Shown one piece after another: positions 15,494-59,190 of a stretch of DNA of 64,000 nt; positions within the stretch are counted from its first letter, which is position 1; each line of letters opens with the position of its first letter. The DNA is from Rebecca billardiae RCC1528 (lineage: Eukaryota; Protista; Haptophyta): NCBI GenBank assembly GCA_965240325.2, contig OZ251229.1, positions 1,798,001 through 1,862,000 of the forward strand, in the 5' to 3' direction. Made by a program: the position numbers and the translations under genes. Below the pieces are notes generated by a model, which had not been told where the DNA came from, ran no database searches, and worked only from the letters and a program-made list of their open reading frames with translations.

Positions 15494-18400
15494 TCCCCCC
15501 CCCAAGACGGGCCCGGCCCGTGATGTGCGCAGCGGAGGCGCGCGGTCGAAGTCGCGCTTTCGCCGCGTCTGAAAAAGCGCCGTGGTACCTTTGCGCGCGC
15601 TGCGCGCCACTGGGCGCACGGTGGCGGCTGCGCGCCGCCGCGCGGGCCGCATCATCGCGGCCACTGGCGCCACCGCGAGGCCGCGCGCTCGGGCTGGGCG
15701 GGCTGCCAGCCGCGCGTAGGAGCCCGCCGCGCGCGCTCGGCCCGGCTCGCGGCCTACTCGCCGCCCGTGCGCTCGGCACGCGGCCGGCGCGACCCGGGCG
15801 GCGCGGCGCGCGAGGTTCGCGCGCCCGCTCGCCGGGCGCGTGAGCGAGTCGGGCGCGTTCGGTCGGCGGCGCCTGAGGGAGCGTGTCCCTCACGAGCTGT
15901 AGCGAGCCGGGCTCCCTCGCCTCGACGCCCGAGGCGGTGCGCCGCGCGCGTTCTGTGCCGGTCTGCGGCGGCGCAGTGGCTGCGCTCGCGCACGGACGGC
16001 CGCTGGGCTTGGATGGGCGCTCTCGAGCGCGTTTGGCGGCGGATCCCGCGCGGAGCGCTGGGGCAGGCACGGCGATCCGCCCTGTCCGCGCCCAGCCCGC
16101 CTCGTGACGGAGGCCTTGCCCATCGACCGCTCGCGCGCCTCACCGCCGGCGCTAGACCGGAGTCGGGCGTGGGCCGCACGCGCCGCGCGGGCCGCGCGCG
16201 CGCCCGGTCGGCCCACGAAGGCGATGCGATGTGCTCTTCACTGCGCCTGACTCTCGCATGCGCTGACTGGCCGCACGCCTTCTTGGCCGTCGCCTTTGGC
16301 GCGCCTGGCTCCAGCATGCGCGCGTGTGTCGCTGTGCACGAAGTGGGCACAAGTCAGAAGTGTAGCAATCGTGAGCGGCGCTTAGCCTGCGGGCTACGTA
16401 TGCAGCTTGCCCCGTGCCTGATATATCGCTGGGCACGCGAGAGGCTATGCCACACATATCCAGATATGCGCCAGTAGATAGCACGTGGCTACGTCCAACA
16501 CGTCTAGGCGGAAGGTCGGGTGAGTCTAACAACTGAGGCGGCGACCCGAATACCTAAGTCCTAACAACATCGACGGCCAGGCCCGTCGTGGTGTCACGTC
16601 AGCTGAGACTCTCTGGCTGACAGGTCAGAGCCGCCATCACCGATGCCGTGCCCGCGCCGATGCGGCTAGGCACACGACCGAGCGAGCATGCGCCATCACG
16701 GTATGCCCGAGGCAGGCCCGAGGCAGCCCACCATGCTGGCCGACATCATCTCGGGCTCGGCATCCAGGACGGCAGTTGCTGGCCGAGCAGGCTAACGCGC
16801 CGGCCCATAGTGTGCTCGCAAGTTTGCTCGGCCCATAAGGCGCTTCCTCCCGAGGTCGAGATCGTGGTGGGCCACCAGCTGTGCGCGCCGGCCAACCTTG
16901 CCTCAAACGCCAAGCGCAAGCAGCTCGCCATCTGCTGCCGCGGCAGAGGCGAGCTGAGTGCGCCAGCCAGCCTGTGTCACCGCCTGACAGACCAAGGCAT
17001 CATTGGTGACTGCTCGTGTAGCCGTGCCATCCAGAGTGCAATTCAGTGGGGCGAGCTGCTGCTGGTCAGGCGACAGAGGCTGTGCCCCGTGTCACACGCG
17101 GACGTCGCAGTGCGAGAGAGCACGCCGAGGCGGCGCTGCAGGTAGCGAGAGCGGTTGAGAATCATGCCCGACTGACACTGCTGCCCGCATTGTCAGCATT
17201 GCTTGCTGGAAGGGCTGGCTGCAGGTGCCACCCAGCCCGCCGGCCAGCCAACCGTCGTCGCCACCACCATCGCAACTGGCATACCCGCCGCCACCACTGC
17301 CAACATCTCCGCCGCTACGCCCGCCGCGTAGAACGCTGCCGTCGCCGCCGCCAGGCCTGCCACCGAGCTCGCAGCCAAGCCCGCAGCCATCACCGCCACA
17401 GTTGCCCCCTCCTCCCAGTCCGCCGCCGAGCCCACCGCGGATCCCACCACCATCGCTACCACCATCACCGCCAGCGTCGTCACCACCTAGTCCACAGCCG
17501 TCATCACCGTCATCATCACCGCCCAGTCCGCCGCCGATCCCAGAGCGTCGTCGCCGCCATCGTCTCTGCCGCCATCGCCGCTGCCCAGCCAGTCCAGTCT
17601 CGCGCGGTCATCGCACAGTATTCAAGCTCAACGGTCGACACTACATCAGCAGGCCGGGTGGTGGTCCCAGGTGCGCATGGCAACGGGTGTCAAGCAGCGT
17701 CGTCCGCTCAACAGGTGTACGTTCCCTACATCCGTGCTGCTGCTCGGGCTCTGGCGAGTCTGGCAGAGCTGTCGGCACTGCACACGCGCGGGCTCGCGCA
17801 CACTGCAGCGTCTATGTGCAGCACTGCTGAGTGAACAGCGCGCACACAGCCATGGGCACGGCATGCCTAGCACGGCCGTGAGACGGGCGTGCGCGGCTGC
17901 GCTCGGGCGGCCCAGGCTGCATCAACTGCGCATGTCGCTCGCCAACACTCTAGCTGGGCCTGCTAGCTCAGCTTGTGCGCATGCGCAGCCGGTGCTCAGT
18001 CGGCTCGGCACAGTCACTGCTATGGGCGATAGCAGCGCTTTGTGCCCTGCTGTGCCAAGGTCTGCGCAGCTGTGGGCTCATTGGGCGCGGACAGCAGCAT
18101 GCGCCGCGCGCCGCATGTCTGTGAACGCTGCCAGCTAGCGCACTCAAAGGGCAGCAGCCAGTGGTCATGACTGCAGCAGGAGGGCACTCCTCCAGCACCG
18201 CAGGCATGAAGACGCATGAGCGCTGAGCATGGCGAGAAACGAGTGCGACCGGCTAAGCAGAGATGCCAGCTGAAAGGTAGGCTGCTGCAACTGCATTGCC
18301 CTCGCGTGCCGCCAGATGCCGCGCCACCTTCGTGGGCTGACCGGGCGCGCGCGCGGCCCGCGCGGCGCGTGCGGCCCACGCCCGACTCCGGTCTAGCGCC

Positions 18401-19055
18401 GGCGGTGAGGCGCGCGAGCGGTCGATGGGCAAGGCCTCCGTTACGAGGCGGGCTGGGCGCGAACAGGGCGGATCGCCGTGCCTGCCCCAGCGCTCCGCGC
18501 GGGATCCGCCGCCAAACGCGCTCGAGAGCGCCCATCCAAGCCCAGCGGCCGTCCGTGCGCGAGCGCAGCCACTGCGCCGCCGCAGACCGGCACAGAACGC
18601 GCGCGGCGCACCGCCTCGGGCGTCGAGGCGAGGGAGCCCGGCTCGCTACAGCTCGTGAGGGACACGCTCCCTCAGGCGCCGCCGACCGAACGCGCCCGAC
18701 TCGCTCACGCGCCCGGCGAGCGGGCGCGCGAACCTCGCGCGCCGCGCCGCCCGGGTCGCGCCGGCCGCGTGCCGAGCGCACGGGCGGCGAGTAGGCCGCG
18801 AGCCGGGCCGAGCGCGCGCGGCGGGCTCCTACGCGCGGCTGGCAGCCCGCCCAGCCCGAGCGCGCGGCCTCGCGGTGGCGCCAGTGGCCGCGATGATGCG
18901 GCCCGCGCGGCGGCGCGCAGCCGCCACCGTGCGCCCAGTGGCGCGCAGCGCGCGCAAAGGCACCACGGCGCTTTTTCAGACGCGGCGAAAGCGCGACTTC
19001 GACCGCGCGCCTCCGCTGCGCACATCACGGGCCGGGGCCCGTCTTGGGGGGGGGA
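15494..19055. mobile_element. Foldback-type element with ~730-bp inverted arms (15494-16221 / 18327-19055) and a ~2.1-kb decayed cargo
   Basis: The arms are near-perfect reverse complements (mirror ORFs appear in the track). Termini are C9-AAGACGGG...CCCGTCTT-G9. No transposase and no clear TSD seen. Confidence 0.85.
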
Positions 19056-43212: not shown

Positions 43213-43572
43213 TTTCATCTCTTCTGCCGGTTACACCTGCCTGAGCTGTGTTGCACTGTCGTCAAGTCGTCGTCAGTGTACTGGTACTGATGTGCTGGAA
43301 AATGGCGGAAACCTCCCCGAACTCATATGTGCAGCTGCAACGACAGGTACGGGTCCGACGTTATCGTAGGAACCAAAGTTGTCTCCTGCTAGTTTTTGTG
43401 ATGAACCGTATATTGAAGAACTTCCCGACATTTCTTACCCAGGGCGGCCGCGGTGCGCTTGTGATTGGTCCGCGGCGAACAACTGCCCAAGGGAAGGAAG
43501 CCGACCGACGAACGGTACCAGTATCCCGCCCAAACCAGCCAGATCCAATCATTGTCAGCCTCGCCGATCAGA

Positions 43573-44679
43573 ATGTTGGCGCGACTGTGCCGCGTTGACG
43601 GGCATAGGCTGGGCATCGTCGCCGCGCTCGCGGGGGTGTTGCTCATCTCGAGCGATGGGCTGCTGGTCAAGCTCGCCGGCATTTCGGGCGCATCGGCGGC
43701 GTCGATTGTCATCTTCAAGGGCCTCTTCGGCGCCAGCATGATGCTGGGAGGGATTGTGTGCAGGCGCGTGGCCGAATGGCGCGCCGCGACGCCCGCCGCG
43801 CCGTTGGAGTGGGCGCCGAGCCGCGAGGGCCTTCGACATATCGTGATCGGCGCGTTCCTCGCGGCGTTCCTTTTCATCGGCTTTACGCTGAGCTTCCATT
43901 TCACCACCTCGGCGAACGTGCTCGCGTTCACCGCGCTCTCGCCCATCTGGGCGTCGCTGCTCACCAAGCCCGTGCTCGGCGAGCCGCTACTATGGCGCAC
44001 GATCATCGCGAACGCGGGCGCGCTCGTCGGGACGGCCATCGTCGTCACAGGCGTCGCGCTACGGGCGGGCGACGCCGTCGCCACGAGCACGTCCGTGCTC
44101 GGCACAGGCCTCGCCATCCTGACTGGGATCGCGAGTGGCTTCTACTATACGACGATCCGCTCGGCGCACACGCGCGCGCCGGGGACGAGCATGATCTACG
44201 CGCCCGCGCTGGGGCTGGTTCTCGCCACGGGGTTCGGCCTGGCGCTGATACCCGTGCTGCACGACCCGGCCAAGCCGCTCGTGCCCAGCGGCATGGCCAT
44301 GGTGTGGATCTTTGTGAACGGCGCGTTTTGCGTCGCGACCGCGATCGGGTTTGTCACCCTCGCGGCGACCCTGGCGCCGCCGGCGGAGGTGTCGCTGGTC
44401 ATGCAGCTGGAGGGGCTGCTCGGCCCGCTGTCGACATTCATCGTGCTCAACGAGGTGCCCACCGTCTTCACGCTCTGCGGCGGCTTGGTCGTGCTCACGT
44501 GCGTGATTGGGCACGAGGCCCTCATGTTCGTCTCGCTGACGCGCCAAGCCCGCGAAGCCAAAGCGGCCGGCGCCGACTTCACCGCCAACGGCAACGGCGT
44601 CTCTCACGAGGAGGTATTGTCGAATGGGAACGGAAAGCGCGCTCCCGCGGACGAGGCGCTCGTCGTCGCGAAGGTCTAG
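43573..44679 (+). CDS. Drug/metabolite transporter (DMT/EamA family)
   Basis: About 10 hydrophobic helices; SSDGLLVKL, ALSPIWASLL...VLGEP and PAEVSLVMQLE...LGPL...NEVP. Confidence 0.9.
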   Translation: MLARLCRVDGHRLGIVAALAGVLLISSDGLLVKLAGISGASAASIVIFKGLFGASMMLGGIVCRRVAEWRAATPAAPLEWAPSREGLRHIVIGAFLAAFLFIGFTLSFHFTTSANVLAFTALSPIWASLLTKPVLGEPLLWRTIIANAGALVGTAIVVTGVALRAGDAVATSTSVLGTGLAILTGIASGFYYTTIRSAHTRAPGTSMIYAPALGLVLATGFGLALIPVLHDPAKPLVPSGMAMVWIFVNGAFCVATAIGFVTLAATLAPPAEVSLVMQLEGLLGPLSTFIVLNEVPTVFTLCGGLVVLTCVIGHEALMFVSLTRQAREAKAAGADFTANGNGVSHEEVLSNGNGKRAPADEALVVAKV

Positions 44680-44785
44680 CGCCGGGCGCCGTAGCCACCC
44701 GTCTCAGACTTAAGTGGGAGGGCGACCGGACCGTTAAATCGGCCCGGCTGAGTCTGAGCACTCAATAATATATATATATATATAT

Positions 44786-45389
44786 CCATCTGGCCCTTGG
44801 CGCTGGCCTCCTCCGTGCCCTTCGCTCCACCCTAGGTGGGGCAGGGGGTGCGGGGTGTGACGCGCCCAGGGCGGCCAGGTTCCCCAGCATCAAGCACTGC
44901 ATCTGCAGCAGCCCGCCGGCGGGCTGGGCTGCGACATCGACTACCACCTCATCTGCTTCATCGCCCAGAGCGCGCTAGGCGGCGCGCTCACTCTCCAAGC
45001 CCCTCTTCTGCAGCTGCGCGCCGCTTGGCCGGCGCGCGGCGACGCGTACTACGACCTCATCCTCATCCAGGCGCCCACGCCGCACGCGGGCGCACGGGGG
45101 CGACAGCCGCGGCTGCCGCTTGCCGGAGCTGCTCGCCGCTAGGTCGGCGGGCGGCGACATCGACTACGACCTCACCCTCATCCAAGTGCTCCGGAAGGCG
45201 CTCGGCCGCGGCGGCATCTGCCGTCGCCGCCGCGTGCCCCAGGCCGAGGCGGTGCTCCATCCCGGCCCCGCTCCCGTAGGGGGGCAGGGCTGCGGGTGGC
45301 GCACTGTCTGACCTGGACGGAAGGCGCGGACGCATTCTATGTGTCTGTTGCACTCTGAGCCTGACGCTTGTCCGATGCTGCCACGTCGT

Positions 45390-45392
<3 letters not shown>
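44786..45392 (+). mobile_element. Putative non-autonomous retroelement bounded by (TA)n, sharing the 3' end of the adjacent LINE
   Basis: Flanked by (TA)n at 44768-44785 and 45393-45483. It ends CTGACGCTTGTCCGATGCTGCCACGTCGTTAA versus the LINE end CTGACGCCTGCCCGTTGCATACCACGTCGTTAA. Confidence 0.65.

Positions 45393-45483
<91 letters not shown>
45393..45483. repeat. (TA)n tract between two tail-to-tail elements
   Basis: Direct observation. Confidence 0.97.
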
Positions 45484-45487
<4 letters not shown>

Positions 45488-47360
45488 CGACGTGGTATGC
45501 AACGGGCAGGCGTCAGAGTCAGCAAGCTGTAGCAGCAGATCGAGCAGCAGAGACAAACACCAGGATCAGCGCTCCTCGCCGTCGTCCCCCCCCTCATAGT
45601 CGCCCATCACTCCATCGCCGAGCGGAAGCTCGACGCACCGTCTGGCGTCGACGCGCACGCGCCACCGCGGTGGTCGCGGTGCCACGCGTCGTCAGCAGTC
45701 GTCTCGAAGTAGTCGTCGTATGCAGCGCCCCCGCGGGCGCGTGCCCCCGGGCGCACGTGCGCCATGCGCGCGCGGGCGATGAGCATCTTGGCCTGGCCAC
45801 GCAGGCAGCGCATGCCCAGCTCGCGCCGCATGGTGCCGAGCAGCGCGCGCTCGGCGGCGGGGCGCGAGGGCGCGCTGAGGCGCGCGCGCCACGTGTCCCG
45901 CCCCATCTTGGCGATCTTCTTGAGGGTGAGGTCCACCTCCGCGCTCCACTCGCCGAACGCCCCCACGACAATCGGGACGATCGCGGGGAAGGTGTCGAGC
46001 CGCGCCTCGTATGGGCCCACCTGGCCCTCAAGCGTGCCGTAGACCTCGCGGTCGAGGAGCTGCAGCTGCTTGCGCCGCTCGCGCGGGACGAGTTCCGCGC
46101 GGTGGCGCACCGCACCGTTGCGGCCGTCGCTCACCCTGTAGCGCGACTGGCTCAGCGAGATGGTCTTGACCTCGAACAGGGTACAGTTGCCGTGCACCTC
46201 GGCACTCAGGTCCACCACCGGCACGCGCTTGCGGTCCGTGCCGAGCACCGCCTGCGCCTGGGCGGTGGACTGGGCGTGCACCGAGCCGAAGATCCAGGTG
46301 TCCTCCGGCACGGCGTACACACCGGCGTACGTGCGGAAGAACCCCGCCAGCACGCGGATCACCGGGTCGTGCCGGTAGCGTGCGACGTGGTCGCCGGGGA
46401 GCGCGTTGCGGCCGGACGCGCTGAGGAGCGCGTCGCCGTACGCGTCCACCCGGACGCCAGGACCCGAGCGCGTGGGCACGTACGCCCCGGCCTGGGCCAG
46501 CGGCGCGCAGACCGGGCTGGGGATCCCGAGCGCGCGCGCCGCGATCTCGAGCCACTCACCCTGGTGGTGGACCGCCGCGCTGCCGATCGGGAGCGCGCCC
46601 ACGAACGCGAGTGAGGCACGGTCCACGTTCTGGATGAGGTGCACACGGCGGTCGTCCCGCGAGAGAGAGCTGAGCTGCCGCCGCAGGAGCCAGCCGTGGG
46701 TGTTCTCGACGTCCTCCGTGATGTCCTTGGCGAGGCTGTAGTAGATGGTGCCGTCCACAGCCCGGCGTGCAGTGGGTGCCACCTGACCCGCCGGGAGGTG
46801 GAGCACGCAGTAAGGCTGCCGGTTGGGCACAGCTGGCGCCTCCTGCTCGGCGAGCTGGAGGCGCTCCCAGATGGTCGCGAGCGTCCGCCCGAGCGCCGAG
46901 CCCGACTGCAGAAACTGGCGCCATCCGGCGGCGCGCATGTCCACGAACGCGTCGCGGCCCACGCGCGCGACGATGGAGTCGCGCTCGAGGACGCCGTGCA
47001 CGGCGACGCCGCCCTGCATGGGGGCGTGGCGGTCGAGGAACGCGGGAACAGCGGCGTGGGCCCCCGCCCAGAAGGCGGCGGGTGCCCGCTGCGCCGCCGA
47101 GCGCAGGGCGAGCCCCCCGAGGCGGACGGGCAGGCGGAGCCGCTGCAGCATGATGTCGTCGAGCTGGTCGTCGGTGGGGAAGCCTAGCGCGACGCCGGCC
47201 TGCCGGAGGATGATAGCGTCAAACCGCTCACACGCCTCGGCGGTGGCGTCGGGCTCGATGTGGCGGAGGAAGTAGTCGAGCTTCGTCGAGGTCGAGTAGT
47301 GCGTGAGCACCCACAGCCCCTGCTTGTGCGCCGAGCCGAGCCTGTTGATCAGCTTGTTCG
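45484..47360 (-). mobile_element. 5'-truncated non-LTR retrotransposon, CRE-like clade with restriction-like endonuclease (ORF remnant 47360-45607)
   Basis: RT C-terminal/thumb motifs KLDYFLR...FD and LPVRLGGLAL; VDAYGDALL, RHD, the D...EVK endonuclease motif and PIVVGAFGE. The ORF begins abruptly at (TA)n 47361-47384. Confidence 0.88.
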
Positions 47361-47559
47361 TATATATATATATATATATATATATTACAGTCACTGTACT
47401 AGTGTTAGCAGTGACGATGACTGAGCGGTCGTCTATGAATGCCTACAACCCCTTGATGATGTTGGGCCCGATCCCCTCGGAGATCGGTCGTCTTGGCAGG
47501 CTCAGCTGCGCCTGGCAGTAGTGGCACTTGCGTCGCATGGGCGCGCACTGCCCGCGGCC

Positions 47560-50248: not shown

Positions 50249-53676
<3,428 letters not shown>

Positions 53677-56649: not shown

Positions 56650-58691
56650 GCCCTGACCGCTCGTCTCGGCAGGCTGCCCGTGGGCTCCGACGGGCGACGG
56701 CTCCGCTACTCGCGTGCGACGCTTTCCGCCAAGCGCGAGACCGGCCCGCCCACCCCGCGATGAAGCGCGCTGGTGCACGAGCTCGCGTGTTGAGCGCCAT
56801 GGACGCTCTACGTTGGGCAGCGCCTCGCTCGCTCGCGCCTGTGGTGCCGCGCAAGCACCCGCACGCGCATGCTCAAGAGCTGCCGCCCGACAGGGCACAT
56901 GCACGCACGCGAGAGCACTGCCCTGCTGCTGACGAGCGCAGTGGCTCGCATCTCGCAAGATGAGACGAATCCGATGTTTGCTTTCACCGCCTTGGAGCCC
57001 TCTCGCGCGTGGCCACCACAAGCACGCGCGTGCGCACGCACTGAGCAGCGCAGCGCAACACGGCGCGTGTGCTCTTCTCGCGCTGCCATCCATCTCCCGA
57101 CGCAGAGGGCTCGAGCCTGTGCGCGCGCCTTGCCCTGCGGATGTGCGTATGCTCGCTGAACAGATCCGTGGGGGCGTCGAGCAGTCGTCGGCGTGCAGGT
57201 TGGGGGAGCAGCTTGAGAGTTGGCCTTGCGCCGCTGCTGCAGAGCCTAATAAGTCTCCTGGGACGCAGCCCTGGCGGCGCTGGGGGCGCGCACAGCGCGC
57301 GCTCGTACGGCCGTGGATGCGGCCATGCAAGCCGAAGCCGCCTCTGGGCAGCCGCGAGAGAGCGCGCGGCGCCCTCCCATGCCGCGCGCCTCGCTCGCGC
57401 CACGTTCGCCTCGTCTCAGGCCAGCGCGTACGCGCACGCGTGCACGAGCGCCAGCTGTGCGCGCAGCCACCTGTCATCAGCTCGCGCGGGCGCGGGCCGC
57501 TGTGCGGTCGGCGGAGTCAGGCGAGCCGCCGGGTGAGGTTGAGATCTCGTTGGTGCTAAGCAGCTAAGCAAATGACCTCGTCTAGCATGAGCTCGCTCAC
57601 GCCCCGTGCGGAAGCTACGCCGTTCTCCTTTCGACGTGCATATCTGAGGTGTTCCAAGACTTGTGTGCGCTGGGCCGCCACACTGCAAGTAGCACAAGCT
57701 GCGTACGCATCGTCACATGACAGCACGGGCGCGGGGGCACGGGCGCGCGAGCGCGACGATGCGAGAAGCAGTTTACACGTCAAAGACATCTCAAACTCAT
57801 GCAATGGCTCACCCGGCGGCTCGCCTGACTCACGCCGACCGCACAGCGGCCCGCACCGGCGCGAGCTGATGACAGTTGGCTGCGCGCACGGCTGGCGCTC
57901 GCGCTTGCGTGCGCGTACGCACTGGCCTGAGACGAGGCGAACGTGGCGCGAGCGAGGCGCGCGGCATGGGAGGGCGCCGCGCGCCTTCTCGCGGCTGCCC
58001 AGAGGCGGCTTCGGCCTGCACGGCCGCATCCACGGCCGTACGAGCGCGCGCTGTGCGCGCCCCCAGCGCCGCCAGGGCTGCGTCCCAGGAGACTTAGGCT
58101 CTGCAGCAGCGGCGCAAGGCTAACTCTCAAGCTGCTCCCCCAACCTGCACGCCGACGACTGCTCGGCGCCCCCACGGATCTGTTCAGCGAGCATACGCAC
58201 ATCTGCAGGGCAAGGCGCGCGCACAGGCTCGAGCCCTCTGCGTCGGGAGATGGATGGCAGCGCGCGAAGAGCACACGCGTCGTGTTGCGCTGCGCTGCTC
58301 AGTGCGTGCGCACGCGCGTGCTTGTGGTGGCCACGCGCGAGAGGGCTCCAAGGCGGTGAAAGCAAACATCGGATTCGTCTCATCTTGCGAGATGCGAGCC
58401 ACCGCACTGGTCAGCATCAAGGCAGTGCTCTCGCGTGCGTACATCAGCTCTGCCGGGCGGCGGCTCTTGAGCATGCGCGCACGCGCGCGCGCGGCTCCAC
58501 AGGCGCGAGCGAGCGAGGCGCTGCCCAACGCAGAGCGTCCATGGCGCTCAACACGCGAGCTCGTGCACCAGCGCGCTTCAACGCGGGGTGGGCGGGCCGG
58601 TATCGTGCTTGGCGGAAAGCGTCGCACGCGAGTAGCGGAGCCGTCGCCCGTCGGAGCCCACGGGCAGCCTGCCGAGACGAGCGGTCAGGGC
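56650..58691. mobile_element. Long foldback / inverted duplication, ~900-bp arms (56650-57555 / 57781-58691), ~225-bp spacer
   Basis: The arms are reverse complements with scattered substitutions and small indels; mirror ORFs appear in the track. Confidence 0.88.
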
Positions 58692-59190
58692 AGCCGCCTT
58701 GGCCTGCCCTGGCCGCGCGCCGACCGCGGGCTAAATACGTAAGGGGGTCGCCAATGAGAGGGTAAAGTGTTGGTGTCGGCGGCAGTCCGAGTCATCCATG
58801 TTATCATATAATTAACGACGTGGTTACGAATAGATGACGCGATTAATTAAATAACGGACCCGAAACGTATCGAAACGTATCAAACACTATCCGGACACTA
58901 TATCCGGACGACCTGTAACACTATTTTAGGCCATCATTTTACTCAGTTAAGTATGATAGGTGCTTTGACCATATATATGGCTCCAGGTGATCAGGGTCCA
59001 CACCAAGGGGACTTCGAATATTGATCAAGGGCCGTTACGACCCTTGTTATCCATATCAAAACGCCGATCAGACCGGCGCCCGACGACGGAGCGGCCGAGG
59101 AGCCTCTAGCTCCTGGCCCCGAAAACTTGGTCACCCCAATAGCACACGCCGCATCTCTCGGCGCCGCGAGCACCGCGAGCAGCAGGCATC

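Follow-up and report, generated by a model that had tools for sequence, protein, structure and literature searches.

The subject of this study is a pair of inserted elements that stand tail to tail in a window of 64,000 nt (the whole stretch of DNA analysed here) from the haptophyte alga Rebecca billardiae RCC1528, corresponding to positions 1,798,001-1,862,000 of the forward strand of contig OZ251229.1. The GC content of the window ranges from 58 to 84% when determined in 2-kb windows, and several pure (TA)n tracts lie within it. Two of these tracts enclose a 607-bp segment on the plus strand, which we assign to a family termed NA-A, and across a (TA)46 tract from its 3' end lies the 3' end of a copy of a long interspersed nuclear element (LINE), termed LINE-A, on the minus strand. 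NA-A and its relatives are referred to as passengers in the following, and their relation to the LINE, which we assign to the type that carries a restriction-like endonuclease (RLE), is the question addressed here. The locus is composed of the following features:

44768-44785, no strand: (TA)9, what is left of the target microsatellite next to the 5' end of the passenger copy
44786-45392, plus strand: NA-A copy, 5'-truncated, 607 bp, GC-rich
44883-45213, plus strand: three tandem 108-nt units containing GCGAC...ACTACSACCTCA motifs; boundaries are approximate
45355-45392, plus strand: 3' tail of the passenger, common to the LINE and terminating in CCACGTCGTTA(A)
45393-45484, no strand: (TA)46 separating the two 3' ends, which are arranged tail to tail
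45485-45522, minus strand: 3' tail of the LINE, C-variant, typical of LINE-A
45485-47360, minus strand: LINE-A copy of an R2-like RLE LINE, 5'-truncated, representing the last ~1,876 of 4,692 bp
45610-47358, minus strand: remnant of the LINE open reading frame (ORF) with the predicted region following the reverse transcriptase (RT), linker and RLE (RHD ... VVD ... EVK motifs); the 5' limit is approximate
47361-47385, no strand: (TA)12, what is left of the target microsatellite next to the 5' end of the LINE copy

A first-pass annotation of this DNA had noted that the 607-bp segment between the (TA)n tracts ends in a LINE-like 3' tail. When the last 40 nt of the segment were aligned with those of the LINE, we obtained one gap and about 31 identities in 38 positions, and the tail score was reached by 0 of 2000 shuffles regardless of whether the last 40, 60 or 100 nt were used. 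The core of the tail reads CTGACGC-TG-CCG-TGC-(2-3 nt)-CCACGTCGTTA, and gapped similarity reaches about 58 nt. The inverted repeat that the annotation had placed around the TA tract was likewise found, since the terminal motif of the segment recurs as its reverse complement at 45484-45495. The body of the segment had been described as unlike the LINE ORF, and this description held for the full-length passenger: a sensitive blastn comparison of NA-A with the LINE left only the 38-nt 3' terminus as colinear similarity, the remainder being GC-rich low-complexity noise, and neither at the DNA nor at the protein level did the NA-A body show meaningful similarity to the LINE or any to the 11 relatives of the LINE protein. 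The window contains three copies of the 12-mer CCACGTCGTTAA, which ends the 607-bp segment, where 0.06 would be expected. Its third occurrence (58812-58823, minus strand) stands isolated in AT-rich surroundings and is followed by TTAT. We considered this site as a third family and rejected it, because the sequence body that precedes it has only one copy genome-wide, and we therefore take the site for a very short relic insertion or a chance match.

We then compared natural copies of NA-A within the genome from which the window comes (72 Mb in 41 contigs), in which all copy counts are lower bounds, using L011:740-2098 (1,359 bp) as the reference copy. The 607-bp query returned 510 first-look candidates, and all 40 that were scored (40/40) were 96-100% identical over the full query and came from many contigs. 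A search for the tail followed by TA, as the first-pass annotation had proposed, gave 225 exact matches genome-wide and none for a control pattern, and exact NA-A-type tails number at least ~245, so the segment belongs to a multi-copy family rather than being single-copy. The variable 5' truncations that had been predicted were seen as well. Among 30 retrieved loci, the 3' end was constant (...CCACGTCGTTA) and the 5' ends were scattered, no copy was longer than 1,359 bp, and in 28 of the 30 at least 6 bases consisting only of A or T followed directly 3' of the tail. In addition, a query with the 5' half of the element yielded 42 matches, every one of which reached the 3' end of the query (42/42), with 20 of the 42 beginning within nt 1-52 and the others at varied truncation points. 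The longest copies, L011 and L015, share their exact start base and have unrelated flanks, and we conclude from this that full-length NA-A measures 1,359 bp. Only two of the 20 near-full-length copies begin at nt 1; 15 begin at nt 35-46 (L011:740-791 being the first 52 nt), a clustering that points to a favoured start of transcription or to a strong RT stop.

Most of the 30 loci extend farther upstream than the start of the window copy, which equals the last ~600 bp of the L011 reference, from about nt 760. The 607 bp originally delimited are therefore a 5'-truncated copy and not the complete element. Across the 30 copies, merely ~20 sites in ~520 bp are variable, indicating that NA-A copies are very young. 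Taken together, NA-A is a multi-copy, non-autonomous retroposon without long terminal repeats (non-LTR), 1,359 bp in length, of which the window carries a 5'-truncated copy. Tail-to-tail pairs within 100 bp such as that in the window were found at 3 of the 30 loci.

Some NA-A flanks contain further repeats. At L015 (G000:C10), a separate 114-bp repeat occupies the ~110 bp that directly precede the 5' end of NA-A. A first look at the genome gave 343 candidates for it, most of them 97-100% identical, and it terminates in ...GGGGGTTTGAACCCATGACC, which resembles a tRNA T-arm; ARAGORN called no tRNA in L015. This repeat may be a true short interspersed nuclear element (SINE) or a miniature inverted-repeat transposable element (MITE). 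Separately, near-identical 5' flanks were observed at three independent insertions, namely the NA-A copies L009 and L016 and the LINE copy L068. These flanks read ...GGATGGCGGTCAAGGGA(T/A)TT(T/-)GCTGGTGCGCTATCCTCAGAAAAGTTTA... and contain no long TA tract; they are the end of another repeat family that has been reused repeatedly as a landing site.

On other contigs, we found an older passenger subfamily, NA-B (L072, L074, L079), with a length of about 1.2 kb. NA-B and NA-A have only the 3' 488 nt in common, which are 93% identical, and the 5' module of NA-B is unrelated to that of NA-A and contains a 180-bp tandem repeat. Judged from these sequences, passengers are mosaics of exchangeable modules. 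A second point of similarity with the LINE was detected at the opposite end of the element, where the first ~16-27 nt of NA-A and of the LINE are also alike (pattern ATGRCCRASTAGGMTG; 4 of 2000 shuffles). As this 5'-terminal match is absent from NA-B, we treat it as suggestive only.

The body of NA-A contains the three GCGAC...ACTAC(C/G)ACCTCA motifs that had been listed previously, at 44931, 45039 and 45154, reading DIDYHL, DAYYDL and DIDYDL. They belong to tandem 108-nt units that are 48-69% alike and lie in frame with a long open frame, which in L011 comprises 410 codons, starts with TTG and has its first in-frame ATG at codon 60. The motifs are spaced 108/108 in L011 and 108/115 in the window copy, the latter resulting from a private 7-bp insertion; this insertion and a private 2-bp insertion disrupt the long frame in the window copy. 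In most young NA-A copies the frame is open, its last ~525 nt have a GC content by codon position (~0.73/0.53/0.91) close to that of the LINE ORF (0.73/0.52/0.90), and its stop codon lies 81 nt before the NA-A 3' end. These properties bear on two alternative explanations. The first is an autonomous sister LINE with its coding region farther upstream in longer copies, of which the segment would form the 3' part; the frame itself, its gene-like GC distribution and the LINE-like position of the stop codon speak for it. However, neither the 30 loci nor the 42 matches to the 5' half contain a copy that extends beyond 1,359 bp, and two copies begin at the identical base between unrelated flanks. Furthermore, NA-A ORFs matched no Pfam domain, and neither an RT nor a nuclease was recognized. 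Given in addition the dissimilarity to the LINE protein and its relatives described above, we regard a sister LINE as very unlikely indeed.

The second alternative is a semi-autonomous passenger, whose own protein, containing three 36-residue repeats, would aid its spread. Random sequence of 71% GC would hardly contain a frame of 410 codons (with a rough estimate of ~0.018 stops per codon), the frame has stayed open in most young copies with gene-like periodicity in its 3' third, and the three 108-nt repeats are in frame, all of which would fit such a protein. Against this, the 176-aa repeat region had no relative by word search among proteins of 97-308 aa and no usable match in the ESM Atlas, and the 'recognition' score that a language model assigned to it was 909, when compared to the 2300 typical of real families. 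The TTG start, with the first ATG only at codon 60, likewise speaks against a protein. Because a codon-position test within NA-A would have relied on too few sites (the ~20 variable ones), we used the comparison between NA-A and NA-B instead. Differences between the two subfamilies fell on the three codon positions as 7/12/6 and were accompanied by frame-breaking indels, and differences among the 108-nt repeat units were not enriched at third positions either. The spread over codon positions together with the indels leads us to conclude that the frame is not under coding constraint, which counts against the sister LINE and also against a protein of the passenger; the latter we consider quite improbable. 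On these sequence comparisons, the NA-A body would be non-coding today, and its origin may lie in an old coding sequence.

The element on the other side of the (TA)46 tract was characterized by walking upstream through its copies, which led to a natural full-length LINE of 4,692 bp with a 13-nt leader and a single ORF of 1,518 aa. Over the 5' ~3.3 kb that were compared, six full-length copies showed 99-100% identity, and all six (6/6) start at the identical base, adjoining TA-rich sequence. Rfam searches detected no ribozyme or small-RNA head at the LINE 5' end. The relatives of the LINE protein are unnamed and mostly metagenomic, the closest five being ~40% identical. Pfam detected RVT_1 only weakly in the LINE protein (E=0.0085), but the domain was present in 9 of 12 family members; the LINE fragment of the window gave no Pfam match. 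While a single-sequence search of the LINE protein against the PDB gave no match, the family profile retrieved R2 proteins (E=8.5e-18) ahead of LINE-1 ORF2p (2e-7), so that among solved structures R2 comes nearest to the RT of the LINE. We modelled the last 330 residues encoded by the window copy with AlphaFold (predicted local distance difference test score, pLDDT, 73), and the model aligned to the R2 C-terminal linker and RLE with Z 11.2-13.9 over ~200-220 residues, followed by other PD-(D/E)xK nucleases with Z 6.5 or below. The RHD and D...ExK motifs are conserved among the LINE relatives; a CCHC zinc-knuckle pattern ahead of the nuclease was not seen by eye in the LINE sequence, and the relatives retain only two conserved Cys at that place. 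From the intact ORF of near-identical copies together with the profile and the structural model, we conclude that the partner is a young, autonomous, R2-like LINE of the RLE type that inserts in (TA)n.

We next turned to the distribution of the tail. A degenerate tail pattern had 522 exact matches in the genome and none in the control. A metagenome scan for the tail pattern gave no match. The first 100 of the 522 matches comprised 47 tails of the NA-A type, 43 of the LINE-A type and 10 of an older variant termed 'T', which has 62 exact matches in the genome. The 'T' tail was found on older passenger subfamilies and also on three old LINE-bodied fragments that are 88-92% identical to LINE-A, and the tails of the older passengers and of the older LINE fragments are identical over 32 nt. 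Since then, LINE-A has altered one base of the tail and NA-A about six. Within one screened class of tails (A before the motif, TA-phased flank), only 3 were of neither LINE nor passenger type, and the combination of this result with the old tail shared over 32 nt indicates that the passengers inherited the tail from the LINE or that the two co-evolved. Moreover, several passenger subfamilies that differ in their bodies carry the tail precisely at their 3' end. At two loci on other contigs, insertions are stacked: in L075, LINE 3' fragments of 256, 137 and 54 bp follow in series and precede a passenger fragment, and L077 has an additional piece of tail, ~17 nt long, that is oppositely oriented. 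Such stacks are best explained by repeated use of the same TA tracts.

Considering these data together, we propose that the R2-like LINE most likely supplies the enzymes with which NA-A spreads into TA repeats. The family is multi-copy and lacks enzymes of its own, it shares its tail with the LINE, and both families are flanked by (TA)n, which supports the candidate LINE-dependent non-autonomous family of the first-pass annotation. Several observations weigh against this proposal. The NA-A tail differs from that of the sole intact LINE at 6-7 of 38 positions, and among the tails examined none of the NA-A version stood on a LINE body; the LINE protein must therefore tolerate these changes, or another partner exists. 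Folding the 3' tail as RNA, which had been suggested as a check, revealed no conserved fold: the individual tails did not fold better than shuffles (z-scores -0.6 to +1.7), and the consensus fold of nine tails was weak and had no supporting covariation. Hence, recognition may depend on sequence. The tail differences and the missing LINE body with an NA-A tail could also mean that NA-A was moved by other machinery, either an unseen LINE lineage or another TA-targeting class, and that its tail is a relic of recombination or template switching. Yet a fixed 3' end together with 5' truncations of graded length marks target-primed reverse transcription and not recombinase elements, and NA-A contains no split direct repeats or terminal repeats. 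A relic would also have to account for a tail positioned at the exact 3' terminus of several passenger subfamilies that differ in their bodies, and for a census in which only LINE-type and passenger-type bodies appeared, apart from the 3 others in the one screened class. We consider other machinery improbable and retain mobilisation by the LINE as the preferred explanation.

According to the mechanism that we envisage, one (TA)n microsatellite would have received two independent non-LTR insertions in opposite orientations. Because the reverse complement of (TA)n is again (TA)n, the target offers an insert two equivalent orientations, and the two 3' ends consequently lie opposite each other on either side of what remains of the tract, (TA)46. 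The LINE protein would nick (TA)n and bind RNA via the last ~32-40 nt, including the core that ends in CCACGTCGTTA. Target-primed reverse transcription would then begin at the bound 3' end, and incomplete copying would give rise to the variable 5' truncations. NA-A RNA, bearing the same 3' end, would be copied in trans. Mobilisation in trans, the tail as recognition signal and the route by which NA-A is transcribed are what we infer from the arrangement of the copies. As to transcription, we were wondering whether the (TA)n target also acts as a promoter for the insert downstream of it, as it forms a run of TATA boxes. This would explain how NA-A, NA-B and other passengers, whose head-less 5' modules are unrelated, as well as the LINE with its 13-nt leader, are transcribed and amplified, and the starts at nt 35-46 in 15 of the 20 near-full-length copies are what would be expected if a full-length source were transcribed from tens of bases downstream of the TA tract. 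Were this so, the variants of the tail found in nature would also delimit a minimal core of ~25 invariant bases for recognition by the RT. We put this promoter role forward as a tentative idea and regard it as rather unlikely.

The first-pass annotation had called the segment a SINE-like passenger of the LINE. In a broad sense, and for the stringent type of LINE/SINE pair, this holds, but NA-A is not a strict SINE, as it measures 1.36 kb and has no RNA polymerase III (Pol III) head: ARAGORN found no tRNA, no 5S or 7SL head was detected, and searches of its 5' end against Rfam at E up to 1 gave neither a head nor a ribozyme, only chance miRNA-like rows. Classic SINEs, in contrast, carry a tRNA, 7SL or 5S Pol III head and are shorter than ~600 bp. 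We also compared NA-A with short internally deleted elements (SIDEs). It shares with the LINE its 3' end and at the 5' end a match of ~16-27 nt only, while a body of ~1.27 kb is unrelated to the LINE, and NA-A is therefore not a SIDE. A parallel exists in Entamoeba, where EhSINE1, with a length of about 0.55 kb, has no tRNA-type head and shares the 3' end of EhLINE1. Like the pair described here, EhLINE1 and EhSINE1 combine an RLE-type LINE with an enzyme-less partner that uses the same target sites. The differences are that the targets here are (TA)n microsatellites and those in Entamoeba T-rich sites, that the NA-A passenger measures 1.36 kb and resides in a GC-rich haptophyte-type alga, and that the passengers here are mosaics with a common 3' module of ~490 nt and unrelated 5' modules. 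In Entamoeba histolytica, EhSINE is called the non-autonomous partner of EhLINE in a publication whose reference list cites Mandal et al. (PMC3118788).

Similarities were also found to two other groups of elements. UnaL2 and UnaSINE1 are presented as a stringent-type LINE/SINE pair (Kajikawa and Okada 2002, as cited in PMC4494074) and, like NA-A and its LINE, share only the LINE 3' tail, which is taken as the RT recognition site; partner LINEs of the UnaL2 type, however, use a nuclease of the apurinic/apyrimidinic endonuclease (APE) type, whereas LINE-A is predicted to use an RLE. R2 SIDEs (PMC3414825) resemble NA-A as non-autonomous riders of a target-specific RLE LINE of the R2 group that depend on the LINE 3' end. 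They keep the 5' ribozyme and the 3' untranslated region of the parent, whereas the ~1.27-kb body of NA-A is unrelated and no ribozyme was detected at either 5' end. With respect to the target, most RLE-encoding LINEs are target-specific, and microsatellites are among their targets (PMC4640811). LINEs that insert into microsatellites include Dong and Togen with (TG)n and some HERO families of the RLE type as well as Kibi in (TC)n and Koshi in (TTC)n of the APE type (PMC4640811, PMC4494074). LINE-A is like these in inserting specifically into simple repeats, its target being (TA)n. We found no (TA)n-specific LINE, or one with a passenger, in the literature, although the search was limited and is not proof of absence. 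By analogy, NA-A and LINE-A appear to work like the known systems of RLE LINEs and their passengers, and NA-A adds a clean new family to a known type of genomic parasite.

Several other features of the window are worth recording. Upstream of the tail-to-tail pair, an open frame at 43465-44679 on the plus strand contains an EamA-type transporter domain (E=2.8e-13), and its stop lies ~90 bp upstream of the TA tract that hosts both insertions. Farther downstream, an inverted repeat with arms of 342 nt (50367-50708 and 53040-53381, 97% complementary, 2.3 kb apart) adjoins a (TA)85 tract at 53506-53675 (170 bp) and 47-bp tandem repeats at 50257-50348 and 53405-53497; it is probably another mobile element at a TA tract. 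A second inverted repeat has arms of 734 nt at 15495-16228 and 18320-19053 that are 98% complementary with 2.1 kb between them, and nested inverted repeats at 56650-58691 (with 95% complementary arms measuring 217, 400 and 264 nt) form a palindrome of ~2 kb.

Passengers that borrow the 3' end of a LINE are textbook knowledge, and the finding thus leaves existing concepts unchanged. What it provides is an R2-like algal retrotransposon, specific for microsatellites, together with its passenger, and this pair is clean, young and internally controlled. The natural variants of the tail on LINE-A, 'T' and NA-A bodies map the positions that are free to vary while copies accumulate, and this information is useful since R2-type proteins are under development for targeted DNA insertion (PMC13580325, PMC13586686). 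For annotation of the R. billardiae genome, it is relevant that the two families have placed over 500 insertions into (TA)n tracts and that some of these sit directly beside genes.

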